64,000 nt of DNA from Mobula hypostoma (lineage: Eukaryota): the NCBI RefSeq assembly GCF_963921235.1, contig NC_086101.1:31806001-31870000 (forward strand), given 5' to 3'. The notes under the pieces were generated by a model. That model made no database searches. It saw only the letters and a program-made list of their open reading frames with translations, and was not told the DNA's origin. Positions 1,630 through 64,000 of the stretch are shown one piece after another. A program made the position numbers and the translations under genes. Positions within the stretch are counted from its first letter, which is position 1, and every line of letters begins with the position of its first letter.

Positions 1630-1757
1630 CAGCGGAGAGCGCGAACGCAGTCCCCCACTACCACAAATTCCGCAGTCGAGTATCCCGCATTTGGGGACAT
1701 CGCAGGCGTCAGCACACCCGGAGTGCAATGGGATAGCCTCGTCCTGGAACCTCGGCC
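1630..1757 (-). pseudogene. RNU1: U1 snRNA 3' portion (nt 37 to end), interrupted by Tx1 insertion
   Basis: Reverse complement reads GGCCGAGGTTCCAGGACGAGGCTATCCCATTGCACTCC...AATTTGTGGTAGTGGGGGACTGCGTTCGCGCTCTCCGCTG. It is identical to nt 37-163 of the intact copy at 21411 except for a 1-nt indel. U1A loop, SL3, Sm site and SL4 are present. The retroelement poly(A) abuts it directly. Confidence 0.96.
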
Positions 1758-2133
1758 TTTTTTTCCAAAAATACTTTATTCAGAAATATTACAAAATAAA
1801 AATAATTACATACAAGAAAAGAAAACCATTCGTTGACTGTAAGTCCTTATTCAATACAGTTATTAACAATAAAATTTTGCGTTGACTCTCTGTTCATTTA
1901 CAAATGAAAGATGTTTACAGTAAATCATGCGTTTACTCTCAACCCTTGGTCAAGAGTTAAAACTTATTAACAATCAAAATTTTCAACAATAAAGGCAGGC
2001 AATGGCTGTAATATTTTCCCAAATTAACAATTCCACCCACTCCTTGGGCACCATGCTGATTATCTGTCCACACCGCTGATGAGGGTAGGTCTCCTCCCCA
2101 CCCAACCTCTCCCCCTCCTACGGGTGATGAACG

Positions 2134-5100
2134 TTAAACTGTGGTCCTTCCCCACCGGGCCCTTGCGGTGGCTGCACCGAGTTTCAGTGCGTCCCTCAGC
2201 ACGTACTCCTGCAGCCGAGAATGTGCCAGTCGGCAGCATTCTCCCACGGACATCTCCATGTGCTGGTAGATCATCAAGTTTCGGGCCGACCAAAGAGCGT
2301 CTTTCACCGAGTTGATGATCTGCCAGCAGCACCGGATGTTTGTCTCCGTGTGCTTCCCCGGGTACCGCCCGTAGATCAGAGAGTCCTCTGTTACGCAGCT
2401 GCTGGGCACGAATCTTAGTACTGTCCCTTCCATTCTCTTCCACACCTTCTTTGCGAACCCACAGTGTGCAAAGAGGTGGGTCACAGACTCCACCCCATTA
2501 CATTCCTCCCGTGGGCAGTGGGGTGCGGAGACGACGTTCCGGGCGTACAGGAGGGCTCTGACTGGGAGGGCCCCTCTCACCGCCAGCCAGGCGAGGTCTT
2601 GGTGCCTGTTGGTGAGATCTGGCGATGAGGCATTTTGCCAGATGAACTGGACGGTCTGCTCAGGGAACCACCCCACTGTGTCCATCTCGTCCTTCTCCTG
2701 CAGTGCCTGCAGGACATTACATGCCGACCACTGTCTAATTGCCCTGTGGTCAAATGCGTTGGTCTTGAAGAATTTTTCTACGAAGGACAGGTAAGGGGGC
2801 AACGACCAGCTGACAGCGGTGTTACGCGGGAAAGAAGCCAGACCCATCCTTCGTAGCCAGGGCGACAGGTAAAACCTAGGCACATAGTAGTACTTTGTGC
2901 CCACGTATCTGGGATCCACGCACAACCTGATGCAGCCACACACGAAGCTGGCCATCAGGGTGAGGGCGAAGTTCTTGCCCCCATTGTCCAGGGACTTGTG
3001 CATGGCGGTCCGTCTCACCCGCTCCATCTTGGATCCCCAGACGAATCTGAAGACAGCCCGGGTGATTTCCGAGCTGTAGGAGCGGGGGACGGGCCACACC
3101 TGCGCCAAGTACAGCAGCCCTGAGAGCACCTCACACCTGATGACCAGGTTCTTGCCCGTTATCAACAGGGAGCGCCCTCCCCACAGTCCCAGTTTCTGTT
3201 TCACCTTGGCAGTCCGCTCCTGCCAGTTCTTGTTGATCGCCTCAGTCCCTCCGAACCAGATCCCCAACACCTTCACGTGGTCAGATCTGATGGTGAAGGG
3301 GACGCTGGATCGGTCGGGCCAGTTGCCGAAGAGCATGGCTTCGCTCTTCGTGCGGTTGACCCTGGCCCCCGACGCTAGCTCGAACTGTTCGCAGATGCCA
3401 ATCAACCTGCGAACTGACCTCGGATCAGAGCAGAAGACGGTGACGTCATCCATGTACAGGGAGGTTTTCACTTGGGTCCCTCCACTGCCTGGCAGCGTCA
3501 CCCGTCTTATGCCCTCATCCCTCCTGATGGCTTCTGCAAAGGGTTCTATGCAGCAGACAAACAAGACAGGGGAGAGGGGACAGCCCTGCCTGACTCCAGA
3601 CCTGATGGGGAAGCTGTCTGTTTCCCACCCGTTGACCTGGACTGCACTACGGATGTCTGTGTAGAGCAGTCTGATCCAATTCCGGATTCCCTCCCCAAAT
3701 CCCATTTTGGAGAGCACGTCCGCCATGTACGAGTGCGATATCCTGTCGAAGGCTTTCTCCTGGTCCAAGCTGACCAGGCAGGCGTCCACCCCCCTGTCCT
3801 GCACGTAGGCGATGGTGTCCCTCAGCAGCGTGAGGCTGTCTGAGATCTTCCTGCCTGGTACAGCACAGGTTTGGTCTGGGTGGATCACCTGTCCCAGAGC
3901 AGACTTGACCCTGTTGGCGATAGCCTTGGACAGGATCTTGTAATCCATATTCAGGAGAGAGATGGGTCTGCAATTCCAAATGTCCTCCCTTTCCCCCTTC
4001 TGCTTGTAGATGAGGGTGATGATGCCCCTCCTCATGGACTCAGACATACTGCCGGCCAGAAGCATAGCGTTGTACACTTCCAGCAGGTCTGGGCCCATCC
4101 AGTTCCACAGAGCCGAGTACAACTCAGCCGGTAAGCCGTCGCTTCCGGGAGTCTTACCCGACCCAAAGGAACGGATGGAGCCTGTCAGCTCGTCCAGGGT
4201 CAGTGGCTGATCCAGACTCTCCCGCTTGCCGTCGTCTAAGACCTGCGTGATAGACGACAGGAAGTTGCGGGAGGCTGTGGATTCTGTGGCCTTTTCGTCG
4301 TACAGACCGGCATAGAAGGACTTGCAGATCCTCAGTATGTCGGTCTGCGAGGACGCGACTGAGCCGTCCTCTTCCTTAAGGTTGTGGATCACAGAGCTCC
4401 CCCTGTGCACCTTTTGGAAGAAGAAGCGTGAGCACGTCTCGTCCTGCTCCACGGTTTGGACCCTTGATCGGAAGATGATCTTGGAGGATTCGGCGGCGAG
4501 GTTATGGGCTTGCCGGCCCCTTCACCTCTCGCAATTCCTCCCTGACATCCACCCCCTTCGACTGCAGGAGGAGAAGTTGCTGCAACTCTGTCTGGAGTTT
4601 ACGCAGTTCCCTCTGCTCCTGCCTTGCCTTCTGGATACCCTTGCGAATGAAGAACCTCTTAATGTTCTCCCTGGTGGCTTCCCACCAGTGAACCGGGGAA
4701 TCAAAGACGGCTTTCAAGGTTCTCCAACCTGTGTACTCCCTCTCTAGTTCCTCGATGTTCTCTGGGGTCAGCAGCTTAACATTCAGCTTCCAAGTCCCCC
4801 TGCCTGCCTTCTGGTCCTCCCGTAAGCGACAGGTGGCTCTCAGAAGGCAGTGGTCAGAGAAAGACACCGGCGTGACGTCGGTGGACCTGACCGTGAGGGA
4901 CTCAGACAGGAAGAGGAAGTCGATCCGGGAGCGGGCTGAGCCGTCCGATCATGTCCAGGTGGCTTGCGGCTGTGCTCCACCTGTGGGGGTGCCAAAGGCA
5001 TCGCGCAGCTTGGCAGTCTTTACTATTTCCCTCAGGAGTCTGGAGGTACTGTCCAGCCTGCCGGGCCCTCCAGCCGCATCAATGGTGCAGTTGAAGTCTC

Positions 5101-5516
5101 CGGCCAGAACGACCGGCTGGGACGTCACCAGCAGCTGTGGGAGCCGCTCGAGGTCGGCCAGCCGCTCGCTCCGCACGGGGTAGGCGGACACGTTGATCAG
5201 CCGGAGCGGAGTGCCCCGGTATTTGACGTCTGCTACCAGGAGGCGCCCCGCAACCACCTCTTTAACTTGGGTGATTGAGAAGTTGCCTCCCCGCAGCAGA
5301 ACCCCCAGGCCAGAAGCGCGACCATCGTTGCCCCCCGACCACACCGACAAACCCTGGGACCACCACCGTGACCACCGTCGATAACTCCTGAGGTGCGGCA
5401 GACCGCACTCCTGCAGGAAGGTCACGTCGGCGTTCACGGTGTTCAAGTACCGAAGCGCGCTGACGCAACGTCCAGTACTTTTCACGAACGTTTAAGGACG
5501 CCATTTTAAGGTCCAT
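2134..5516 (-). pseudogene. Tx1 ORF2 (AP endonuclease, reverse transcriptase, C-terminal CCHC), disrupted
   Basis: ORF pieces 5516 (MDLKMASLNV), 4949-5485 (FLQE, GDFN), 4502-4867 (SDH) and 2134-4452 (PGSDG, QGCPLSP, YMDD, CPREEC..HLFAHC). Frameshifts near 5485 and 4500 and an in-frame TGA at 4949. Confidence 0.93.
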
Positions 5517-5523
5517 CACCTTT

Positions 5524-7185
5524 TTATAAATCCTCGTTCTCTTCTTCCCCGTCTGGAGGCCTCATACCCACAGTCTTGGTGAAGTCTTCCACCTGCTGAG
5601 GGTTCAGGTACTGCTGGTACTCCCCGCCAGGGAGGGGCGCCACCGGTTCGGCACCAAATGGAACCTCCGGGGGCGCCCCTCCATCTGGCCGCAGACCACC
5701 AGAAGTAATACTGCTCCCGGATTCCCGGACCTGAGAGACTCTGCTGATCCCCCCATCCTGCGACTGGGGGGTGGCTAGCAGACCTTCACTCTTCCCCTGA
5801 CTCTCCTCTGCCCGATTAACCCGCCTCTTCCTCTGTCGGGGTTTCTGGCCACCCCCACCGCCCTCCTCCTCCGAGGAAGACAGGTGCTCAGAGGACGAGT
5901 GATGCTCAACCTCTCTCTTTTTAGAGCTCCCCAATTTGTCCGCCCTTTGTCTTTTTGGCGGCATCTTTAGGGTCTTTTTCCGTTTCGTGACCACCCTCCA
6001 CTTTTCCTCTTCCCCCTCGGCCCTCCCCTCTTCCATTGACTCCTCCTCATCAAGCGGGGGGTCTTGGGTGTCCTGCAAGGTGGAGGGGGCGCTCAGGGTG
6101 GGCTCTTGTCCCTCCATCGCAACCTGCGTCTCCTCTACAGAGACGGCGGGCACTTCCACTCCAGCTGGGGCTATCCCGATGTCATCACTACCCCTGGCCA
6201 CCTGTGCATAGGAGCCCACCCGTTTCGGACAGGTCCTATAAAGGTGGCCCGCCTGCCCACAGAGGTTGCAGGATTTGGCCTCCGTACAGTCTTTGGTAAG
6301 GTGACCCTCCACCTTGCAGTTTCTGCACACCACAGCCTTACACTGGGCCGCGATGTGCCCTGCCTTGCCGCAGTTTCGGCACAGTTTCTGTTGCCCGGCG
6401 TAAACCAGGTAGCCCCGGTTCCCTCCGATCGCAAAGACTGAGGGTGGGTGGATGACAAAGCCATTGGTGTCCGTCCTTAACTTAACCCTGACCTGCCGTT
6501 TAGATGTCCAAACCCCCAGAATGTCGTCAACGTCCTCACACCCCCACACTCTCTCTGCATAACGTGCTAGGAAAGTGGGAACGTCGACGACAGGTACATA
6601 GGGATTAAACATGTGTACCGTAACTGTTCTCTCCTGCGACCCCTCGGCAAAGAGAGGTTGCACTTTAAATAGCGACAGCGGCGCCTCGCTCCCCTTCTTG
6701 GAGAAACACTGGCGCATTTTCCGCCACCCCTCGGCACGCCGGAAGGTGACATCATAGTAACTCGGGAAATCCTGCACACAGTACAGATCATCTACCTTAA
6801 AGCCGCAGCAATCGAAAAGCACCTTACGAATGAAGGTAATCCGATTGAAGCCGTTGCCATCCTTCAGATCCTTGACAGTCATTCGCACAGTGTTCTTGAT
6901 ACCAGCTCCACGAGCGGAAGGGCTTGTCTCCCCCGACTTCCTTCTCGGTGCGCTGGACTCCCCAGCTCTCTTCGTCGATTCGCTGCTCTCCGCAGCTCTC
7001 TTCCCCGAATCGGGGTTCTCCTCAGCTCTTTCCCCGGAATCGGGGTTCTTTTCAGCTCTCTTCCCCGATTCACTGGTCTCCGCAACTCTCTGCACCGATT
7101 GGCTGGACTTTCCAGCCGCCTTCTTCGCTACTACTCCGGATTCTTCAGTCTGAACCATTGATGCTTTGGACGCTACAGCTCTCAT
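5524..7185 (-). CDS. Tx1 ORF1 gag-like RNA-binding protein, 553 aa, intact
   Basis: Open ORF from a true ATG. Three CX2CX4HX4C knuckles (CRNCGKAGHIAAQC, CRNCKVEGHLTKDC, CNLCGQAGHLYRTC), an RRM-like region and a basic/acidic C-terminus. It ends 7 nt before the ORF2 ATG. Confidence 0.93.
   Translation of the reverse strand: MRAVASKASMVQTEESGVVAKKAAGKSSQSVQRVAETSESGKRAEKNPDSGERAEENPDSGKRAAESSESTKRAGESSAPRRKSGETSPSARGAGIKNTVRMTVKDLKDGNGFNRITFIRKVLFDCCGFKVDDLYCVQDFPSYYDVTFRRAEGWRKMRQCFSKKGSEAPLSLFKVQPLFAEGSQERTVTVHMFNPYVPVVDVPTFLARYAERVWGCEDVDDILGVWTSKRQVRVKLRTDTNGFVIHPPSVFAIGGNRGYLVYAGQQKLCRNCGKAGHIAAQCKAVVCRNCKVEGHLTKDCTEAKSCNLCGQAGHLYRTCPKRVGSYAQVARGSDDIGIAPAGVEVPAVSVEETQVAMEGQEPTLSAPSTLQDTQDPPLDEEESMEEGRAEGEEEKWRVVTKRKKTLKMPPKRQRADKLGSSKKREVEHHSSSEHLSSSEEEGGGGGQKPRQRKRRVNRAEESQGKSEGLLATPQSQDGGISRVSQVRESGSSITSGGLRPDGGAPPEVPFGAEPVAPLPGGEYQQYLNPQQVEDFTKTVGMRPPDGEEENEDL
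6960..7140 (-). repeat. 30-bp coding tandem repeat in ORF1 N-terminus (5-6 copies)
   Basis: cagctctc or variants at 6963, 6993, 7023, 7053, 7083 and 7113; encodes SGKRAEKNPD/SGERAEENPD/SGKRAAESSE units. Confidence 0.9.
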
Positions 7186-7395
7186 CTCCGATCCACTGCC
7201 GCCCTCAGCCCTCAGCCCTCTCCTTTAAATCGCTGGTCTTCCCAGCACTGCTTCCCGATGTACTGGTCTTACCAGCCATCCAACTTCTTGCTCAGGCACC
7301 GCACGTTCGGCAGTGCCCTCACCGCCCGATCCTCTCTCCGCGAAGGATCTCTCCGTTCCGAGAACGGCAGAGACCGCTACGTTCTTAGAAGAACG

Positions 7396-7445
7396 ATGGG
7401 ATAGTCTCGTCCTGGGAGAACAGCCTTCGCGATCACCGTCTCCCC
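7396..7445 (-). other. U1 snRNA-derived head (stem-loop I plus start of SL2) at the 5' end of Tx1 copy A
   Basis: Minus strand reads GGGGAGACGGTGATCGCGAAGGCTGTTCTCCCAGGACGAGACTATCCCAT, which aligns to U1 nt about 15-66. It folds as GGGAGA-CGGT[GATCGCGAAG]GCTG-T-TCTCCC. Confidence 0.88.
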
Positions 7446-7462
7446 GTCCTGGAACCTCGGTC
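7446..7462 (-). repeat. Target-site duplication of copy A (U1 nt 37-53)
   Basis: GACCGAGGTTCCAGGAC matches GGCCGAGGTTCCAGGAC at 1757-1741 with one mismatch. Confidence 0.9.
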
Positions 7463-7589
7463 TTTTTTTTCAAAAATACTTTATTCAGAAATATTACAAA
7501 ATAAAAAGAATTACATACAAGAAAAGAAAACCATTCGTTGACTGTAAGTCCTTATTCAATACAGTTATTAACAATAAAAATTTTGCGTT
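7463..7589 (-). mobile_element. Tx1 copy B, severely 5'-truncated (about 125 bp of 3' end plus poly A)
   Basis: Near-identical to the copy A 3' terminus (1765-1885). Preceded on the minus strand by a second U1 TSD, GGCCGAGGTT(C), at 7590-7600. Confidence 0.9.
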
Positions 7590-7600
7590 GAACCTCGGCC

Positions 7601-8008
7601 TTTTTTATCCAAAAAATATTTTATTCAGAAATATTACAAAATAAAAATAATTACATACAAGAAAAGAAAACCATTCGTTCACTGTGAGTCCTTATTCAAT
7701 AGTTATTAACAATAAAAATTTTGCATTGACTCTCTGTTCATTTACAAATGAAAGATGTTTACAGTAAATCATGCGTTTACTCTCAACCCTTGGTCAAGAG
7801 TTAAGACTTATAACAATAAAAATTTTCAACAATAAAGGCAGGCAATGGCTGTAATACTTTCCCAAATTAACAATTCCACCCACTCCTTGGGCACCATGCT
7901 GATTATCTGTCCACACCGCTGATGAGGGTAGGTCTCCTCCCCACCCAACCTCTCCCCCTCCTACGGGTGATGAACGTTAAACTGTGGTCCCTCCCCACTG
8001 GGCCTTGC
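7601..8008 (-). mobile_element. Tx1 copy C, 5'-truncated (3'UTR plus end of ORF2)
   Basis: Near-identical to 1758-2165. Its poly(A) is followed by U1 nt 37-47. Homology stops at about 8008. Confidence 0.9.
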
Positions 8009-8484: not shown

Positions 8485-10205
8485 TAGTCAGTAGGAAGTC
8501 TATCCGGGGGAGCGGGCTGAGTCGTCCGATCGTGACCAGGTGGCTTGTGGCTGCGCTCCAACTGTGGGGGTGCCAAAGGCGTCGCGCAGCTTGGCTGTCT
8601 TCACCGTTTCCCTCAGGAGTCTAGAGGTACTATCCAGCCTGCCAGTTCGTCCAGCCTGCCGGTTCGTCCAGCCGCATCAATGAAGTCTCCGGCCAGAGCG
8701 ACCGGCCGGGACGGTCAACAGCAGCTGTGGGAGCCGCTCGAGGTCGGCCGGCCGCTCGCTCCGCACGGGGGAGGCGGACACGTTGATCAGCCGGAGCGGA
8801 GTGCCCCGGTATTTGACGTCTGCTCCCAGGAGGGAGCCCCGCAACCACCTCCTTAACTTGGGTGATTGAGAGGCTGCCTCCCCGCAGCAGAATCCCCAGG
8901 TCGGAGGCCCGACAATCATTGTCCCCCGACCACACCGACAAACCCTGGGACCACCTCCGGTAGTTGCCGCACTGTTGGAGGAAGCTGACGTCGGCATTCA
9001 GTGTTCAAGTACTGGAGCGCGCTGACGCAAATGAGAACGTTTAAGGACGTTAGCTTAAGGTCGTCAACCTTTACAGATCCTCGTCCTCCCCCTCGCAGTC
9101 CTGAGCCCTCATGCCCACGGCCTTGGTGAAGTCTTTCCACCTGCTGTGGGTTCAGGTACTGTGGGGAGGCAGTGCCGGCTCTGAACGTGGAGGGTCTCCC
9201 GGGGCTGCCTCTCCTTCTGGCTGCAGGCCGCCAGATGCGCTACTGCTCCCGGTTTCCCGGAGCGGAGCTGAGGGGCTCTGCTGATCTCCATCTCCTGTAT
9301 TTCGGGAGTGGCAGGCAGACTTTCACCGTTCTCTCGACTCTTGCCCACCTCTTCCTCTGCCGCCCACCGCCTTCCTCCTCCGAGTTGGACAGGTGACCAA
9401 AGGATGCTTTTAGATTCCACTGCCGTTTCTCCGTCGGCTGCCTTTTTGGCGGAGCCTTCTGGGCCATTTTGCGGTTAGCAACCACGTTCCATGCTCTTTC
9501 TTCCCCCATCAGTCCCCCCCCCCCATGACCCCTCCTCGTCAAGCAGTGGGTCCCGGGTGTTCTGCAAGGGCGGGGGGCTCAGGGTGGATGCGTCTTCCTC
9601 CGTTGTTTCTGGAGGCGCCTCTTCAGAGGTGACGGGAACCTCCAAACCCGCCGGAGCCTCTTCGATGTCATCACCTCCCCTGGACACCTGTACGTAGGAT
9701 CCCGCACGTTTCGGACAGGCCCTGTACAGGTGGCCCGCCTGCCCGCAGAGGTTGCAGGACCTGGCCTGCGTACAGTCCTTGGCGAGGTTCTTACACACCA
9801 CAGCCTTGCACTGGGATGCGATGTGCCCCGCCTTGCCGCAGTTGCGGCACACCTTGGATTGCCCGGAGTAAACCAGGAAGCCCTGGTTGCCTCCGATTGC
9901 GAGGACTGAGGCTGGGTGGATGTCAGCCGCTGGCATCCACCCTCAGCTTCACCCTGACCTGCCTTTCGCTGCTCCATATTCCTGGATTGTCGTTGACATC
10001 CACACTTTTGCCCACATACCGCGCCAGGAATGTGAGGACGTGAACGACTGGTACATAGGGGTTGAACATTTGTACCGTTACCGTTCCTTCTTGCTGCGTT
10101 GCGTCGGCGAAGAGGGGCTGTGCGACAGCGGCGCCTCGCGTAAATATTGTAATTTCTGCCGGCCTGCGGCATGCGACGTCACTGTAACCGGCGAAATCCT
10201 CCGCC
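8485..10205 (-). mobile_element. Degraded Tx1 copy E (part of ORF1 plus endonuclease region of ORF2)
   Basis: ORF pieces 9475-9936 (CRNCGKAGHIASQC, CNLCGQAGHLYRAC), 9923-10219 and 8677-8997 parallel copy A ORF1/ORF2 with many frameshifts. Confidence 0.9.
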
Positions 10206-10304
10206 TTGACCCACAGCAATCCATTATGAAGGGTCTCGGCCCGAAACGTCGACTCTTCCCGTAGATGCTGCCCGGCCTGCTGCCTTCCACCAGCACATTG
10301 TGTA

Positions 10305-10530
10305 CCAAGGCCGTTGGGGAAGGACCAGTTTAGGGTTCGTCACCCGCGGCAGTGGGAGGGGTCGGGCGGTGAGGAGTATACCGCTCATCAGCGGTGTGCA
10401 TAGATGAATCAACATAGTGCCACAGGAGTGGCTGGAAAGGTATAGACGGTAAAGGAATGCGAATCAACGCCTGGTTGTATTGTAAATAGGTTGTATTCCT
10501 GACTAGGGTTTGAGAATCAAGGGATAATTT
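10305..10530 (+). mobile_element. Tx1-family 3' fragment, opposite orientation
   Basis: aaggccgttggggaaggacc...catcagcggtgtgcatagatgaatcaacatagtgcc resembles the ORF2 end and 3'UTR of copy A. Confidence 0.6.
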
Positions 10531-10774
10531 ATTGCAACATCTTTATTTTGAACTAGACAACGAGGTGACCCGTGGGGCACCCTTTGAAAGAGTCAAAACA
10601 GAGCTGCCCTGCCCTTTTGCTCCGCTTGCTGTCGCTGAGCCTGGCCGTGCTCATGGGTCGTGGTGTCGCGTACCGATTTCCATAATGGCGGATCGGCTCT
10701 CGAGTAAAAGTTGATTTTGGCGAATGAGCAATTTATGCTAATATATAACCCTGAACTTTGCCTGTATTCTGTAA

Positions 10775-11425
10775 TTTTTTAAATTTTTTTTCTCCAAAAA
10801 TACTTTATCCAGAAGTATTACAAAATAAAATTATATACATATAAAAAAACATTCGTTGACCCTGAGTCCTTATTCAATAAATAGTTATTTACAATAAAAT
10901 TATGCGTTGACTCTGTTCATATACAAATAAAAGATGTTTACAATAAATCGTTCGTTTACTCTCAACCCTTGGTCATGAGTTAAGACTTTACAATAAAATT
11001 ATCAACAATAAAGGCAGGCGTTGGCCCTAATTTTTTTCCAAATTAACAAATCCACCCACTCCTGGGGCACCATGTTGATTCATCTGACCACACCGCTGAT
11101 GAGGGTTAGTCTCCTCCCCACCCAACCCCTCACACTCTCACGGGTGATTAACCTTAAACTGTGGTCCTTCCCCACCGGGCCTTCGCGGTGGCCGCACCAA
11201 GCTTGAGTGCATCCCTCAGCACGTCCTCCTGCAGACGAGAGTGAGCCCGTCGGCAGCATTCAGTCACGGACATCTCCATGTGCTGGCAGACCACCAAGTT
11301 TCGGGCCGACCAAAGCGCGTCTTTCACCGAACTGATGATCTGCCAGCAGCACCGGATGTTTGTCTCCGTGTGCGTCCCCGGGAACAGCCCGTAGATCAGA
11401 GTCCTCGGCAACGCAGCTGCTGGCG
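10775..11425 (-). mobile_element. Tx1 copy D, 5'-truncated sister subfamily, non-U1 site
   Basis: ORF 11154-11411 matches the ORF2 C-terminus (..ATAKARWGRTTV); the 3'UTR resembles copy A. Flanked by the 8-bp direct repeat TTCTGTAA (10767-10774 and 11426-11433). Confidence 0.88.
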
Positions 11426-18001: not shown

Positions 18002-18488
18002 GTAACGAGTCTTTCTAAAGCTGTGGGAGGGTTGTGTCTCCACATTAACAAGAGCTGGTGAGCAGACACTCAGTAGTACCAGCCCACTGTTCACAGCCAG
18101 TAGAGATCTCAGTGAACAAGTACTGGCCCTGCTACTTACCAAGGGAGTGCACTGCATTTCTGATTGTAACTGTGTACTGTATATTGTCAAGTCTTTCTTC
18201 CACACAGACACTGCTGCCCAGGTTTGGGATCTGGCTGGATTCAGACTCAGGACGATCCATCTCAAAGTCCAGTGCTGATACCACTAAACCACTGGCTGGC
18301 CCTTCACATACTGACGAAAAATCGACTGTCCACTCTTTTCCACAGATGCTGCCTGGCCTGCTGAGTTCCTCCAGCATTTTGTGTGTGTTGTTGGGCTTTC
18401 CAGCATCTGCAGATTCGCTCTCGTTGGAACAGAAGTAGAGAGGTATGGTATTTGGGTTCGTTGTCTGTTCAGAAATCTGATGGCAGAG

Positions 18489-18912
18489 ATGGATCTCCAT
18501 CCCGGTGAGAGGATTCTGGTCAGTTTGGAGTCAGGGAGTGATGGATCTCCATCCCAGAGTGAGGATTCTGGACAGTTTGGAGTGTGGGAGTGATGAATGT
18601 CCATCCTGGAGTGAGGATTCTGGACAGTTTGGAGTGTGGGAGTGATGAATGTCCATCCCGGAGTGAGGATTCTGGACAGTTTGGAGTGTGGGAGTGATGG
18701 ACGTCCATCCCGGTGAGAGGATTCTGGACAGTTTGGAGTGTGGGAGTGATGAATGTCCATCCCGGTGAGAGGATTCTGGTCAGTTTGGAGTGTGGGAGTG
18801 ATGAATGTCCATCCCGGTGAGAGGATTCTGGTCAGTTTGGAATGTGGGAGTGATGGATGTCCATCCCGGTGAGAGGATTCTGGACAGTTTGGAGTGTGGG
18901 AGTGATGGATGT
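18489..18912. repeat. 52-bp minisatellite, 8 copies
   Basis: ccatcc at 18497, 18549, 18601, 18653, 18705, 18757, 18809 and 18861; unit ccatcccggtgagaggattctggacagtttggagtgtgggagtgatgaatgt. Confidence 0.95.
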
Positions 18913-19159
18913 CTGTGAGGATGCTGGAGAATTTGGTGTGGGAGGTGGCGGATGTACAGAGGGGAGTGTTCACTGAATTGGAGGGTCATAGGGATTCCTG
19001 TACAGTAGAGAAACTGAGTGATATTGTACACAGTTCTCTGACAATGGTGACACAGGTAGGGAGAGCAATGGTCTTCGGTCAGGATATTGACGGCTGGAGT
19101 TGGGATGTCATGTTACAGTTGAACAAGACGTGGGTGAGGCCAGTTTTGGTCTAATGTGT

Positions 19160-21410: not shown

Positions 21411-21573
21411 ATACTTACCTGGCAGAGAACCGTTGGTGATCCGGAAGGCCGAGGTTCCAGGACGAGGCTATCCCATTGCACTCCGGGTGTGCTGACGCCT
21501 GCGATGTCCCCAAATGCGGGATACTCGACTGCGGAATTTGTGGTAGTGGGGGACTGCGTTCGCGCTCTCCCTG
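21411..21573 (+). ncRNA. RNU1: U1 spliceosomal snRNA (variant), full length 163 nt
   Basis: ATACTTACCTGG 5' end, SL1-SL4 all foldable, U1A loop ATTGCACTCC and Sm site AATTTGTGG; colinear with vertebrate U1. Confidence 0.97.
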
Positions 21574-21580
21574 ATCTTCA

Positions 21581-24789: not shown

Positions 24790-25600
24790 CAGTCGCCATC
24801 TTCCCCGCTGTGCTTTGTCTGATGTTGTAACAAGTATCTAAAACTCTTGAACCTCTTTTGGCACAGGGCTGACTGAAAGGCTTTCTCCTCAGCGTGATGC
24901 TGCGTTAGATTACTGGACGTGTAAAAGCACTTTCTGCGCACTGAACATGCAAAAGGCCTCTCCCCAGTGTGGATGTGTGAAATCTCTTCTCACACACTGC
25001 GCACCTGGGCCTCTTCTCCCCGGTGTGAACCCGTTGATGCTCGATCAGGTAACCAGACCGGGAAAACCGCTCCCCGCACACAGTCCATTCGAAAGGCTTC
25101 TCTCCGGTGTGAATCTTCTGATGCTGGGTCAAAAGACTGGAGGTAGAGAACCGCTTTTTACACGCAGCACATTCAAACGCTTCCCCATCCGCCTGGACCT
25201 GCTGATGTTGGATCAGATTACTGGACGTGTGAAATCTCCTCGCACGCACGCTACATTCACACGGCTTCTCGCCCGTGTGAATCTGCTCGTGTTTGCTCAG
25301 GTCACAAGCTCTGTAGAACTTCCTTGAGCACAGAGCACAGGCAAACGTCTTCTCGCCGCTATGAATTTTCCGTGTTGAATAGGAGTACTGGATGTGTGAT
25401 TTCTCTTCCTGCAGACGATGCACTCGAAAGGCTTCTCTCCGGTGTGAACCCCCTGGTGCTTGGTGACCTCGCTGGAGGAGTGAAACCGCACCTCGCAAGA
25501 GGCGCACTCGAAAGGCTTCTCCCCGCTGTGGATGCGCAAGAGCGTGTCCAGCGAAAGCGCTTCCCGCACGCGTGGCACGGCGAGGCGTCCCCGCACCGAC
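24790..25600 (-). pseudogene. C2H2 zinc-finger array (about 10-11 fingers), frameshifted
   Basis: HSGEKPF/HTGEKPF linkers are spread over ORFs 25359-25733, 25297-25596, 24905-25636 and 24669-24941 in different frames. Several fingers lack Cys or His (CSVR, WTVC, HQQVQ). Confidence 0.85.
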
Positions 25601-28749: not shown

Positions 28750-29805
28750 TAACCACACAAAAAGTGAGACCTTGCTCTTCGGCAACTGACCCAGCCGATC
28801 CTGTACCCCCTTCACGGTCCGGTGCTGGGGATCTGGTTTGGAGGGGCTGAGTTGGGCAAAGAATTGGCTGCAGTGACTGGGAAGGTGAAGCAGAAATTGG
28901 GTCTGCGGGGAAGATGCTCCCTATCAATAACTGGGAAGACTCTGGTCATCAGGTGTGAGGTGCCCTCAGAGCTGATGTACTTGGTCCCTTGCTCCTCCAG
29001 CTTGGGAATCACTTGAGCTGCCTTCAGGGAATCCAAGGTGGAGGAAGTAAAACAGGTCAGTGCACAAGTCCATGGACACTGCGGACAAAAACATACCAAT
29101 GGCACCCTGACCCTGATGACCCCCTTCATGAATGGTTGCATCAGGCTGTGTGTGGAACCGAGGAAGTGAGCATCAAGTTCCACTATGTGCCGAGGATCTA
29201 CCTGTCCCGTGTTGCGAAGATGTTGCCGGCCTAGTTGTCCTTATTAGCTCAGTACTTTTTTAAATTTCTGTTTTTGCATTACTTACTTAATTTAACTATT
29301 TTTATATATAAAATATAAATTTACTGGGATCTTGTTTTTTTCCCGATATTATCATGTATTGCATTGTACTGCTGCCGCAAAGTTAACAAATTTCACGACA
29401 AATGCTGGTGACTCTGATACTGAATTACTCCAGCCCGTCACCTTTGACTACAAGGCCATCAGCATGGGTCAGCACAGAGCTTCTCGAAAACGCTGCAGGG
29501 AAAGGACTCGATGGACACGGCGGGGTGGCTTCCTGAGCAGACGGTCGGAACCATCTGGCTCACTGCCAGATCCCACCGGCAGATAGCGTGAACTTGCCTG
29601 GCATGCAGTGAGAGGGGTCCTCCCAGACTGTTCCCTCCTGCTTGTCCGGTTCGTCACTCCTGCTGTGCGCTGCCCAAGGGACGATGGAGGTGAGGTTTGC
29701 AAAGAGGGTGTGAAGAAAGATGCGAGGGCCTGTGTCACAGTAGTTCAACCCAAGTGTCGCAGAGGACTCTCTGCCGTACAGGCTGTTCCCAAGGACGGAC
29801 GGAGG

Positions 29806-29853
<48 letters not shown>

Positions 29854-30290
29854 GACATCTATGTTGTTCGCAGATCATTAACTCAGTGAAAGACGCTCTT
29901 TGGTCAGCCTGAAACTCGTTGATCTGCCAGCACATCGAGATTTCCATGGAAGAAAGCTGCCATCTGACCTAGTCCAGGCTGCAGGAGTACGTATTTGCTG
30001 AGGGACACACTGATGCTTGGGGCAGCCACTGTAAGGGCTGGGTGGGGGAAGGACTGGGTGGGGAAGGACCACAGTGTAAAATTCTTCTTGTGCTGGAGAG
30101 GGAAGGGCTGGGTTGGAGGAGAAAGCCCCTCCGTTACTACTGTAGCAGTGTCCCACCCCAGGGAGCAATGAATGCATTGGAACAGAACAGAAAGCATTGT
30201 CTATGGATGTAAAGAATAAAAACGCATTCAACTGTTTATCCTTGTAAATAATTTATTAAGAATAAAGTTTATTCTGTTTAAAAAAAGTAG
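28750..30290 (+). mobile_element. Degraded Tx1-family ORF2 3' half and 3'UTR, with (CA)n at about 29810-29852
   Basis: LGIWFGG..KVKQKLGL..SITGKTLVIRCEV and QIINSVKDALWSA. AATAAA plus A-run near 30263-30288, followed by non-U1 sequence. Confidence 0.85.
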
Positions 30291-43129: not shown

Positions 43130-43520
43130 TCGTTGTTTTGTGGGGGAGGGGGATTTGAGGGTCGACATGCCTGATCTATTTTGCTGTTTTTTTTGTACGG
43201 GGGGGGAAGGATTTCGGGGTTGATGTGCCTGATCTGCTTTGTACATTTTTTGCATGGGAGGAGGGATTTGGGGGTCAACGTGCTTGATCTGTTTCGCTCA
43301 TTTTTTTTTGTGTGGTAGGAGGGATTTGAGGGTTGAAGTGCCTGTTTCTTTTTCTTTGTGGGGAGGTGAGATTTGAGGGTTGAAGTGCCTGTTTCTTTTT
43401 CTTTGTGGGGAGGTGAGATTTGAGGGTTGAAGTGCCTGTTTCTTTTTCTTTGTGGGGAGGTGGGATTTGGGGGTTGAAGTGCCTGTTTTTTTTTGTGGGG
43501 AGGTGGGATTTGGGGGTTGA
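43130..43520. repeat. 47-bp tandem repeat (4 good plus several degenerate copies)
   Basis: gagggttgaagtgcctgtttctttttctttgtggggaggtgagattt at 43328, 43375, 43422 and 43469. Confidence 0.9.
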
Positions 43521-46500
43521 TGATCGTGCTGCCTTTCTCTCTTGGTTTCGTTGCTACCTGGAGAATTGAAGAATTTCAGAGTTGTGTACTTTGATAATAA
43601 ATTGAACCTTTGAGGTTTTTGAGTGTTTTGTCTCCACGTGGAAGGGACTGGGGATAAAGGATATGGAGGCTAAGGCAGTGGTCTGCACCTCCTGCAGGAC
43701 ATTGGAGATCAGAGACTTTGTAATATCCCATTGACTATCCCTGCAGAAAGCGGGTCCAGCTACTGCTCGGGGCAGACCACGCCGAGTACCTAGACTCATT
43801 ATGAAGCATTCCAGCTGCAGAGAATGTGATAGGAGGTTTGGTTAGTCAGTCAATACCATCACAGGTCCAGAAAGAGGAGGTGGATGACCACTAGATAGGG
43901 CAATAAGAACAGGCCAGTAGTACTCGGAGCTCCTGTGGCCACTGCCCTCTCAACTATGTCGGACACTGCTGGGGAAGATACCTCAGAGGAAAGTGGTAAC
44001 AGCAGCCGAGATTGTGGCATCATTGTTGGCTCTGATATTGGTGGATAAAGTTACAGTAAAGAGTAGTGGCCTTTGTTAAGTAAAGCTGTTCTGTGGCTGA
44101 GAGTGAGACCCGAGGATGGTGTACTGCCTCCCTGGTGCCAGGGCCTGTGATTTCTCGGACTGCGTACTGAAAGGTCTGAAGGGGGAGAGAGCAAAGCTAG
44201 AGGTAATTATAAATGTTGATACTAAAGCTACAGGTAGAAAGAGGGGTGAATTCCTGCAGAGGACCTTTAGGGAGATAGGAGAAGGTAAAAAGCAGGAACT
44301 CTATGGCTGTAATCTCAGGATTACTCCTGGAGCATCGTGCTTGTGAGGGTGGAGACCAGGACAGGACAGATGAGTATATGCCTGCACAGTCAGTCACAGC
44401 GCAAAAACAGGCACTGCAGCTCAACTGGTCCGTACTGACCAGATTCCCGTCCAAGCCAGTCCCATTTATCCCTCTAAACCTGTCCAAGTCTGTTTGAATG
44501 TCATTAATTCACTTGCCTCAGCCACCCTCTACTGGCCGCTCCTCCTCATATACTGATCACCCTCAGGTTCCTAATAAATCTCTTCCCTCTATATCCTCTA
44601 GTTCTTGATTCTCCAATTGTGGGAAACAGACTGTACATTCACTCTATCTGTGCCCCTTAAGACTTCATATACCTCTACAAGATCACCCCTCATTTGCCTA
44701 TGCTCCAATGAAAATAAGTCCTAACCTACTCAGACCCTCGAGACCTGGCAACATCCTTATGAGTCTCCTCTGAACTCTTTCCAGTTTAAGGGCATCTTTC
44801 CTATTGTATAGTGACTAAAACTGAACACAATATTCCAGATGCAGTTGTTCAATATGTTGGTGAGGCTGCAAAATAACATCCCAACTTCTAGGCCTGATGA
44901 AGCCCAGCATATCAAAAGCCACCTTCGCCACTCTGTGACACCACTTTCAGGGAACCATGTACTTGTATTCCTAGATCCCTCTGTTCTACAACACACCCCA
45001 TGGAACTTCCTACTCTATTTGACTTTCCAAAGTGCAACTCCTTGAACTTAAAAAATTCAACTCTATTTGCCATTCCTTGGCCCACTTACTCAATCGATCA
45101 AGATCTCTCTGTAAATCCTGATCTTCACAGTCATCAGCACTAGCTATATTAGTATTATTTATTAACCATTCCCTGTACCCTCTCTTCAAAATCATGAAGG
45201 AATTAGTGCAGGAGGGAGGGCTTTAGCTGTCTGGATAACTGTCATTCCTTCTGGGGCAGTTGGGACCTGTATCAGAAGGTCAGGTTACACTTAAACTGGA
45301 GGAGGACCAATATCCTTGCAGAGAGTACTGCTTGCACTACTCAAGAGAGCTGAAACTAAGTTGATTGGAAGTGGGAAACTCAGTAGTGGTGTGACAGTAA
45401 TTGCAATCATGGAAATGTGGTTGTGGGAAGGACAGTTTCCAAGTAAAGAAGTTTCAGATGTGACAGTGGAATGACAAAGATGAGAGGCAGTTGAACTGCC
45501 TATTGAGGAGAAAATCACTGCGGAGGAGATTCTGAAGAGATTTTCCAGTGAAGCCATATCTGTAGAATTTAGGAATAAGAGAGGGGTGGTCAGTTTGCTA
45601 GGATTACATGAGAGGCCTCTCTTCCATAAATTTGAATTAGGATGGATATGTAAACGAGTTGCAGAAATGTGTTAGAGTTATAGTAGTGGGGATTTTATAT
45701 TCCCCAGTATTGAGTGAGATCAATTCAGTGCAAAGAACTTAGATGGAAGGAAATTTGTTACGTGTATCCAAGATAGTTTATTCATACAATACATGGAGAG
45801 CACTGCCAGAGACCATGCTGCACATTTAGCGTACCCAGGAAATGAAATCAGGCCTGAGGTGGAAGTGTTCGTGGGAGGATGCTTTGGGAACAATGACCAT
45901 AATTCTGCAAATTCCAAGGTAATTATAGGAAGGGTTCCCAAGTTAAGATCCTGAACAGATGGAAAAGTAATTTCACTGGTGCAGGAAAAGACCTGACAAA
46001 GGTAGGATGGGAGAAGATATTTGCAGGTAAAACAATAGCTGACGATTGGGAGGATCTTAAAAGGAGTTAGTTCAGGGCCATTTAGGAAAGGGGAAAGGCA
46101 AAGATAGCAAGTCGTCCTTGGATGAGGAAGGACAGACGTTTTGATCAGATGGAAAAGAGGCGGCGTATGGCAAGAACTTATAAATACAAGTGATTCTGAA
46201 GACGCTGGAAATCCAGAGTGACGCACGCACAAAAATACTAGAGGAGCTCAGCAGGTCATGGAGTTTCTATGGAAGGGAATAAAGAGTCAATGTTTTAGGC
46301 TAAGACATTCAATACGTTCCCTTGGCATATGGTACGTGAAGGAAACTGGAATCAAGCAAACTCTTGTGTCATAGAGCAACACATTACCGAAATAGGCAAG
46401 TTGGCCCCACTTGTCCATGCCAACAAAAATGCCCAATGGATAGACCCATTTCCCTGTGTTTGACCCTATTCAAACCTAGAGGATGCAGACATGAATTTAA

Positions 46501-59559: not shown

Positions 59560-61100
59560 AGGCAGAACCAATATACACCCCACACGTTCCCCCACCGTTC
59601 ACAATCCCTACTGTCACCGCTGAACAGACCCCACCATCACTTCTTCACCGCAACCCACCATTGACCCATCCCTACCATCACCTTCCATGTCACCCCTCAC
59701 CTCCAACACGGTCCCCACCCACATCCTACCATCACTCTCTCTCCCCACCACTGCATCTGACTCCTGCCCCGTCTCTAACATCACCCCACCCCTCCCCACC
59801 CTGTATGATCTCTACTATCAGCCCCAAGACAAAACCTACCATCACATCCGTCTCCAAAATCCCCACTGTCACCCCCCCACAATCCCTGTCATCCCACCAC
59901 CACAAATCCTTATGTCACGCCCACCAGCCCTACAATTCCCACCACACCCCACCCCATATGGTCCCTAACATCACTCCCTCCCCCCTCACACCCGCACTCT
60001 CCCCCATCACCTCCCACACCACTGCACATTCCCTATCATCACCCCCTCATTCAAACATTCTTTATTGTCAACACCCTACCCCCACACTGCCCCTACTCTC
60101 ACCCCCACACCCGCTCAAAACCTACCATCAACTGTCACCCCCACACGATCACCATTGTCACCCCCGCCAGCCCCACAATACCTAACATCACCCCTGCCAC
60201 CCCTTGCAAAATCACTGACGACACCCACACCATCCCTCCCAGAGCCCCCTGTGCATCCCCATGATCGTTAACGTCACCCCTGCACAACCGCATGATCCCT
60301 AACGTCACCCCTGTACACACCCAGGATCACTAACTTCACCTCTGTACATCCCCATGCTCACTAACGGCACCCCTGCACACCCCCATGATCACGAATGTCA
60401 CCCGTGTACACTCCCAAGATCACTAACGTCACCCCTGTACACCCCCATGATCACTAACGTCTCCCCTACCATCCCCAACAATCCCCAACACCCCGTCACC
60501 ACAATTTCTAATGTCATCCCTGCCATCCCTCCCACATACCCTAACATCACCCCTGCACCCCACAATCCCTAATGTTGCCCCTGCTAACAACCACCATCCC
60601 TCACTTCACAGTCCACAATCCCTAACGTCACCTCTACCACCCCCCCATGATCCCTAACGTCACCCCTGCTGTCCCCCACAATCCCCAACAACACCCCTCC
60701 AACCCCAAGATCCCTAACATCACCCCTGCCATACCCAACAAAGCCCAACAACACCCCTGCCACCCAATCCCTAATGCCATCCCTGCCACCTTTCCCATGT
60801 GCCCTAACGTCACTCCTGCCACCCCACAATCCCTAATGTCACCCCGGCTAACACCCACCATCCCTCACTTCACAGCCCACAATCGCTAATGTCACAGCCG
60901 GCACCCCCACCTCAGTCCATTGCATGACCCCCACCCAATCACTACCATCATCTCCACCACCCCACAAACCCCACCGTCACCTTCCACACCCCTCCCCACC
61001 CCACCATCTCTACCATCAGCTCCCCCAACCACCGAAACCGTGCCTGCCATCACCCACCTAATCCCCACAACTGTGTGTTCCCCTCTGCCACCCCTCCCCG
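59560..61100. repeat. C/A-rich degenerate minisatellite in intron 2 with recurrent CCCTAA
   Basis: Units such as atccctaacgtcacccctg recur many times between 59960 and 60890; strong C over G skew. Repeated again at 63230-64000. Confidence 0.9.
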
Positions 61101-63147: not shown

Positions 63148-64000
63148 CTGGAACACATCATCCATTGGCGAGTTGTGGGGCTGTGGAAAACTTTCCATCC
63201 TGCAGATGTGGCTTTTGTTTCCACTCCCCCAGGCAGAACCAATATACACCCCACACGTTCCCCCACCGTTCACAATCCCCACTGTCACCGCTGAACAGAC
63301 CCCACCGTCACTTCTTCACCGCAACCCACCATTGACCCATCCCTACCATCACCTTCCATGTCACCCCTCACCTCCAACACGGTCCCCACCCACATCCTAC
63401 CATCACTCTCTCTCCCCACCACTGCATCTGACTCCTGCCCCGTCTCTACCATCACCCCAGCCCTCCCCACCCTGTATGATCTCTACTATCAGCCCCAAGA
63501 CAAAACCTACCATCAACCGTCACCCCCACACAATCACCATTGTCACCCCCGCCAGCCCCACAATACCTAACATCACCCCTGCCACCCCTTGCAAAATCAC
63601 TGACGACACCCACACCTACCCTCCCGCAGCCCCCTGTGCATCCCCATGATCGTTAACGGCACCCCTGCACAACCACATGATCCCTAACGTCACCCCTGTA
63701 CACCCCCATGCTCACTGTCACCCCTGTACATCCCCATGATCCCTAACATCTCCCTTACCATCCCCAACAATCCCCAACACCCCGTCACCACAATTTCTAA
63801 TGTCATCCCTGCCATCCCTCCCACATACCCTAACATCACCCCTGCACCCCACAATCGCTAATGTTGCCCCTGCTAACAACCACCATCCCTCACTTCACAG
63901 TCCACAATCCCTAATGTCACCTCTACCACCCCCCCATGATCTCTAACGTCACCCCTGCTGTCCCCCACAATCCCCAACAACACCCCTCCAACCCCAAGAT

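Follow-up and report, generated by a model that had tools for sequence, protein, structure and literature searches.

The 5' end of a retrotransposon that interrupts a U1 snRNA gene in the stretch of DNA analyzed here (the window, 64 kb, C12:31.806-31.870 Mb of the 3.48-Gb genome that was searched) is itself a piece of U1. This 50-nt piece, the head, is carried by every 5'-complete copy of the element, has moved with the element body to a site outside snRNA genes, and in one copy is contiguous with a genuine U1 promoter. Insertions of the family recur at U1 nt 36-39. The head is probably a leader derived from the target, co-transcribed or 5'-transduced from a source copy that resided in a U1 gene. 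A U1-headed Tx1 LINE is a known kind of element; what is new is that a headed LINE inserts in U1 genes and that one copy has continuity between head and promoter.

The window element (el1) runs on the minus strand from 7445 to 1758 and is a non-LTR retrotransposon of ~5.7 kb with ORF1 and ORF2. It and its neighbors are laid out as follows.

7396..7445, minus strand: head derived from U1 nt 17-66 of a canonical, L006-like type; its G at 7445 also belongs to the preceding 18-mer
7414..7445, minus strand: hairpin resembling stem-loop I, with loop GAUCGCGAAG and 10 bp that include two G-U pairs; a single U is bulged
7374..7395, minus strand: start of the element body, palindrome CGTTCTTCTAAGAACG, directly after U1 nt 66; kept in 5/5 5'-complete copies
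7186..7395, minus strand: 5' UTR, from the head to the ORF1 ATG
5524..7185, minus strand: ORF1, 553 aa, two ZCCHC3-type RNA-binding domains and CCHC zinc knuckles; 30-nt repeat near the 5' end
4949..5485, minus strand: ORF2 piece with an apurinic-type endonuclease domain, apart from the RT piece
2134..4452, minus strand: ORF2 piece with RT (RVT_1) and zf-RVT domain
1758..2133, minus strand: 3' UTR and A7 tail; last 203 nt 96-100% identical in at least 40 dispersed copies
1630..1757, minus strand: 3' flank, abutting the A7 tail; nt 37-164 (the end) of the local variant U1, with 100% identity to 21445-21570 of the intact variant gene
1630-1789, minus strand: disrupted U1
21411..21574, plus strand: variant U1 gene, intact (142 bits), used as the standard for the local target type
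7445..7462, minus strand: 18-nt piece of variant U1 (nt 37-54, GACCGAGGTTCCAGGACG), apparent 5' TSD
7463..7589, minus strand: el2, truncated upstream monomer, last ~120 nt of the 3' UTR and A8
7590..7600, minus strand: GGCCGAGGTTC, variant U1 nt 37-47, identical to 1747-1757; candidate true 5' TSD of the composite insertion
7601..8006, minus strand: el3, a further 5'-truncated copy, ~400 nt of the 3' end and A6, stacked at the same U1 site

The domain layout, with RNA-binding and CCHC motifs in ORF1 and endonuclease, RT, and zf-RVT domains in ORF2, fits a Tx1-clade LINE. The protein relatives are vertebrate endonuclease (APE), RT, and zf-RVT proteins, one of which is automatically named 'transposon TX1' (42% identity), and the best named match is from Mobula hypostoma (92%). 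Judged by these relatives, the element is likely a Tx1-type LINE of a cartilaginous fish. Its ORF2 is broken in the window copy, since the endonuclease and RT pieces lie in separate ORFs. A tandem repeat of ~30 nt at the start of ORF1 (window 6950-7080) spans ~700 bp in the L002 copy (L002:1860-2560). Older related Tx1-type fragments, 74-89% identical and in both orientations, lie around U1 genes at window 9442-11423 and 28875-29992. Elsewhere in the window, an 84-nt periodic repeat at 24895-25536 resembles a C2H2 zinc-finger array on the minus strand, and tandem repeats occur with periods of 52 nt (18429-19000), 31 nt (60215-60498 and 63600-63728), and 47 nt (43302-43536).

Read on the minus strand from 7445 to 7396, the head is GGGGAGACGGTGATCGCGAAGGCTGTTCTCCCAGGACGAGACTATCCCAT. 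It aligns to U1 nt 17-66 without gaps, close to the span of about nt 15-66 given in a preliminary description of this DNA, and the head region matches U1 genes at E values of 3e-11 to 4e-7 in the whole-genome search. The Rfam U1 model (RF00003) yields a local match over model positions 17-47, with 15.1 bits and an E value of 0.08; because this score is far under the gathering score of 69.5 bits, the head is a fragment of U1 and not a gene. The best-matching U1 paralogue is the type of the gene at C12:118.88 Mb (L006, loop GATCACGAAG), with 46/50 positions identical, as compared to 43/50 for the main cluster type (loop GATCATTAAG) and just 38/52 for the local variant U1. That cluster, at C12:12.37-12.59 Mb, holds at least 15 genes, L008 and L020 among them, spaced 7-9 kb apart and with the SL1 loop GAUCAUUAAG. 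The usual SL1 loop of vertebrate U1 is GAUCACGAAG. Contigs of putative RNA runs contain U1 with a GAUCAUU loop, so this type appears to be expressed. The proposal that the head came from a U1 paralogue other than the local one is therefore borne out. Alignment of the heads and U1 types likewise agrees with the claims that its stem is unlike that of the local variant U1 and that it falls outside the local target sequence, and the near-cognate cut site described within it (GCGAAG/GCTGTTCTCCCAGGACG, the slash marking the cut) is present. A few bases past U1 nt 66 (window 7374-7395, minus strand) are still similar to U1 nt 67-76.

The hairpin formed by the head has 10 bp and a 10-nt loop, and its energy of -12.5 kcal/mol compares with -12.3 kcal/mol for the real U1 SL1 of the main cluster. 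It had been described as a perfect SL1-like hairpin; the hairpin stands, but with a 1-nt bulge and two G-U pairs it is not perfect. Relative to shuffled sequences, the z-score is -1.6 for the hairpin and -0.4 for the full 50 nt, and on these values the suggestion that the head holds more structure than chance was rejected.

The genome contains at least 338 candidate 3' ends of the element family, but just five copies with a 5' UTR. In all five, the U1 piece ends at nt 66 and is followed by CGTTCTTCTAAG (TGTTCTTATAAG in L005), and the palindrome at the start of the body is kept, in L005 in the form TTCTTATAAGAA. The sequence leading up to this boundary takes several forms. In the window and at L002 (C12:21.16 Mb), poly(A) and GACCGAGGTTCCAGG(A/T)CG precede U1 nt 17-66. 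The L003 copy (C22) begins with U2 nt 1-29, joined at a common GATCA to U1 nt 33-66. At L004 (C12:12.43 Mb), the head comprises U1 nt 1-66. The L005 copy (C2) has U2 nt 1-29 followed by U1 nt 33-49; a loss between two CCCA repeats has removed nt 50-65. The 5' UTRs of the window, L002, and L003 copies are mutually 95-96% identical, whereas those of L004 and L005 are 79-80% and 76-77% identical to the others. A head carried by copies whose 5' UTRs are 76-96% identical must be old and inherited. Divergence of the head between copies is about that of the neighboring 5' UTR, and the loop differs by lineage (GAUCGCGAAG, GAUCGUGAAG, and GAUCACGUAAG, with GGUCGUGAGG in a second species, species B). 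Aligning the 5' ends of the copies, as the preliminary description had proposed, revealed a common head; in the stem, a double change from C-G to G-U preserves one pair, and the loop is not conserved. Protein matches were also used to look for 5' ends in other species; the related locus L092 (80% identical in ORF2) has no 5' end and no U1.

Two of these copies bear directly on how the head travels. The L003 copy, 5.46 kb long, sits at a non-snRNA site, and U2(1-29), U1(33-66), the body, and A7 all lie within a duplication of 7-8 bp, (A)ATAATTG. Because this whole unit, head included, is flanked by a TSD outside snRNA genes, the head was part of the retrotransposed RNA. The L004 copy is internally deleted and lies inside a genuine unit of the U1 cluster, in the order U1 promoter, U1 nt 1-66, element, A9, U1 nt 40-164, and 3' box. 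Its promoter region (-509 to -17) is 89-91% identical to those of neighboring units. A source copy transcribed from a U1 promoter would be expected to have this layout. The U1 nt 1-66 segment is 83% identical to cluster U1, versus 95% for the 3' U1 part. A later insertion of 430 bp at U1 +1 (L004:1056-1484) has its own 13-bp TSD, GGGATATTTATCT, and ends in ~150 bp of inverted-repeat (MITE/SINE-like) sequence.

The head is also found in species B, whose contigs are ~91% identical to window 7006-7404 and continue on the minus strand as TGGTCGTGAGGGTGGAGGTTCTAGGACGAG, then CTATCCCAT, then the body. Over the 30 nt of head that are visible, it matches the variant-type U1 at 24/30 positions, versus 19-21/30 for the canonical types, and it again joins the body at nt 66. 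These 30 nt are suggestive of a boundary that was kept while the U1 type of the head changed, which would fit conversion from targets or re-copying of the head from them, since re-copying predicts an exchangeable U1 type behind a fixed boundary.

Insertion into U1 genes is recurrent. Pattern counts together with reading of individual loci revealed at least seven poly(A)/U1 junctions at U1 nt 36-39, in three U1 types, and reversed-pattern controls gave none at nt 36-39. These junctions are at window 1757, 7462, and 7600 (the last belonging to el3), C12:21160397, C12:31802305, C12:12595719, L004, and L046. Those at C12:31802305, 3.7 kb before the window, and at C12:12595719 both fall at the SL1-loop site, one in a variant U1 and the other in the main cluster. 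L046 is a stacked insertion (L046:1709-3200) in which a 3' end and poly(A) are followed by GGCTGTTCTC (L006-type U1 nt 37-46) and then by a copy, 96% identical, whose truncation point falls inside ORF2. A search for insertions that hit the head gave none; in L046, GGCTGTTCTC precedes a 5'-truncated copy, not a head. Since 27 of the 30 inspected 3' ends lie at unrelated sites, the family has a preference for U1 and not a strict specificity.

The immediate 5' surroundings of the window head require a separate account. The head had been placed inside the TSD, and the 18-mer next to it (7445-7462) does resemble one, matching the 3' flank at 17/18 positions. The assignment is doubtful, because the 18-mer recurs at L002, again with the G-to-A change and again joined to U1 nt 17, at a locus where neither flank is U1; the upstream monomer there measures at least 1180 nt and has non-U1 DNA beside it. 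Pattern counts detected no poly(A)/U1 junction at the expected 3' end of L002. A segmental duplication of the window and L002 loci was also considered and was rejected for the 5' side, where the flank of L002 (L041 1-540) has no similarity to the window. This recurrence without U1 flanks indicates that the 18-mer was probably inherited rather than made at the window locus. The junction of 18-mer and head is most simply explained by a tandem source array, via a transcript that would have read through two monomers, although a DNA-level copy or gene conversion may also have produced it. The 11-bp GGCCGAGGTTC at 7590-7600 and 1747-1757 would then bracket a composite window insertion made up of el2 (~120 nt of 3' UTR), A8, the 18-mer, the head, el1, and A7. 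A variant U1 gene would have received this unit at nt 36/37, with a TSD of ~11 bp, and el3 would have been stacked later. In this arrangement, el2 is probably what 5' truncation has left of the upstream monomer in a dimeric read-through retrocopy.

These observations allow us to propose how the head arose. An ancestral or source copy would have resided in a U1 gene of the canonical type, joined to it after nt 66 on the 5' side and at nt 36-39 on the 3' side. Possessing no promoter of its own, it would have been read from the upstream snRNA promoter of that gene, giving an RNA that begins with U1 nt 1-66. The leader would be reverse-transcribed with the element and so carried along to each new insertion site. 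Where that site is a U1 gene, the end of the cDNA that is complementary to the leader could pair with the 5' half of the target, producing a seamless junction between U1(1-66) and the element; at diverged or non-U1 targets, the leader would be truncated on arrival or re-joined by microhomology. The window copy has a leader truncated to nt 17-66, which probably arrived within a read-through retrocopy of two tandem elements that was itself truncated at the 5' end (el2, A8, 18-mer, head, el1). Co-transcription with the target and homology-assisted 5' joining have been discussed for R2 and proposed for SINEU/Tx1 (PMC4494074). Among the functions that the preliminary description listed for the head, homology with U1 loci aiding 5' integration comes closest to this explanation. 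Several null results weigh against this explanation. Same-species contigs over 7396-7427 are plain U1 snRNA and not element transcripts, and none bridges head and body. Neither a U1 5' half nor a promoter was found upstream of the window array or the L002 array, and no intact master copy in a U1 gene was found in the genome. The higher divergence of U1 nt 1-66 in L004 relative to the 3' part also counts against a target-derived leader, as do the position of 27 of 30 inspected 3' ends at unrelated sites and the U2 pieces of L003 and L005, which start at nt 1 of an snRNA and join through GAUCA microhomology.

Such U2 additions are what template switching onto snRNA predicts, and the same mechanism could have made the original U1 head. 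The RT of an ancestral Tx1, at the 5' end of the element RNA, would have jumped onto U1 snRNA and copied it to the cap, and the chimera would have become a master whose head was inherited passively, with the U2 pieces added likewise. Consistent with this proposal, the U2 pieces begin exactly at U2 nt 1 and join at GAUCA (U2 nt 25-29, U1 nt 28-32) in two copies that are 76% identical, which suggests recurrent events; the L004 head begins at U1 nt 1; and recurrent U1/U2 5' additions, with occasional microhomology, are described for Tx1-mobilized SINEU and for Tx1 families (Kojima 2015, PMC4494074). Indeed, U2 nt 1-29 at L003 (1625-1709, minus strand) and L005 (1459-1528, plus strand) probably reflects recurrent microhomology-guided 5' addition, as in crocodilian SINEU. 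For the U1 head itself, however, we regard template switching as unlikely. Every copy, and species B as well, has the junction between U1 and the body at nt 66; U1 nt 1-66 in L004 is contiguous with a genuine U1 promoter and is not duplicated beside the target's own 5' half; and an element that inserts in U1 genes has a simpler source for its head. A chimera of the L1 type, in which the snRNA part begins at snRNA nt 1 and junctions vary from event to event, fits poorly as well: the window head starts at nt 17, the junction is invariant, and only the U2 additions agree with that pattern. The possibility that the head is a single event, whether a one-off template switch, which the preliminary description had allowed for, or co-duplication of a neighboring genomic U1 fragment, is refuted. 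Only one exact copy lies within the window, which is as this would predict, but the head is present in four other genomic copies and in a second species, and its type is unlike every U1 gene in the window.

The preliminary description had also raised the possibility of a fixed snRNA mimic, an SL1-like hairpin kept by selection to bind U1-70K or other U1 snRNP proteins, to protect or localize the RNA, or to guide the RNP to U1 loci. The heads of the window and L002 copies are as stable as the real U1 SL1, the C-G to G-U double change preserves one stem pair, and the head persists in lineages that are 76-80% identical. Each of these points would suit a mimic, yet the reading is less probable still than template switching. 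Loop residues differ in each lineage, U2 nt 1-29 replaces the 5' arm in L003 and L005, nt 50-65 are also lost in L005, and the L004 hairpin is weak (-5.8 kcal/mol). The head has diverged in step with the adjacent UTR, its z-scores are not exceptional, and a strong hairpin occurs in only two copies, which share one junction by descent. A related and more speculative idea, which we likewise consider improbable, is that the U1 leader acts as an adaptive guide: nt 1-66, with an SL1 still able to bind U1-70K, would bring the element RNA to U1 loci or sites of snRNP assembly, where the cDNA end would integrate by homology. If so, target choice would be partly encoded in the RNA and could be reprogrammed by swapping the head (U1 types, U2).

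The element has close parallels among known retrotransposons. As the preliminary description stated, snRNA-headed elements exist: crocodilian Tx1 LINEs carry a U1 head (Tx1-2_Crp, Tx1-2B_Crp, and Tx1-4_AMi) or a U2 head (Tx1-11_Crp), and whether such heads arose by template switch (template jump) or by 5' transduction was left open (Kojima 2015, PMC4494074). Like the crocodilian headed Tx1, the ray element, itself likely an autonomous Tx1-type LINE, has a U1-derived 5' terminus and, in some copies, U2 added 5', and its heads likewise contain the SL1 part of differing U1 types, a swap also reported in SINEU-2 (PMC4494074). It differs in host, a cartilaginous fish here and crocodilians in PMC4494074, and in target, since the preferred target of the crocodilian families is a Mariner transposon, whereas the ray element is found recurrently in U1 genes and has one copy contiguous with a U1 promoter. 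With SINEU (SINEU-1/2/3, mobilized by Tx1-Mar) it shares U1/U2 5' heads, recurrent 5' additions, poly(A) tails, and probably Tx1 machinery, but SINEU are non-coding and shorter than 500 bp, whereas the ray element is ~5.7 kb long and has ORF1 and ORF2. Its recurrent use of one position in a multicopy gene and its tandem stacking recall Keno, a Tx1-clade LINE specific for U2 snRNA genes, and the R2/R1-type LINEs that are transcribed together with their targets, and the models invoked for those elements, dependence on the target promoter and homology-assisted 5' joining, are also those invoked here. Unlike them, the ray element targets U1 (SL1 loop, nt 36-39) rather than U2 or rDNA, and its specificity is loose, with 27/30 3' ends elsewhere. 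The only elements listed as targeting snRNA genes are Keno and Utopia (U2), Dada-U1, and Dada-U6, and as of 2015 only Dada DNA transposons were reported to target U1 (PMC4640811). No later report of a U1-targeting LINE was found in the papers searched. L1-mediated snRNA/L1 chimeric retrocopies such as U6/L1 (Buzdin 2002 and Garcia-Perez 2007, as cited in PMC4494074) resemble the L003 configuration in that a piece of snRNA heads a LINE sequence and a single TSD surrounds both. By the same account, those chimeras are dead-end single events with variable junctions and a 5'-truncated L1; here, the junction of U1 and body is fixed and is inherited across diverged subfamilies.

The finding suggests that U1 genes are a preferred target of this LINE. 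A U1-headed LINE, probably of the Tx1 type, caught in U1 genes, together with the continuity of head and promoter in L004, gives a concrete and testable origin for such heads, in which the head would be the co-transcribed 5' half of the target. This result does not change the field, but it is useful for transposon biology and for the annotation of ray and shark genomes.
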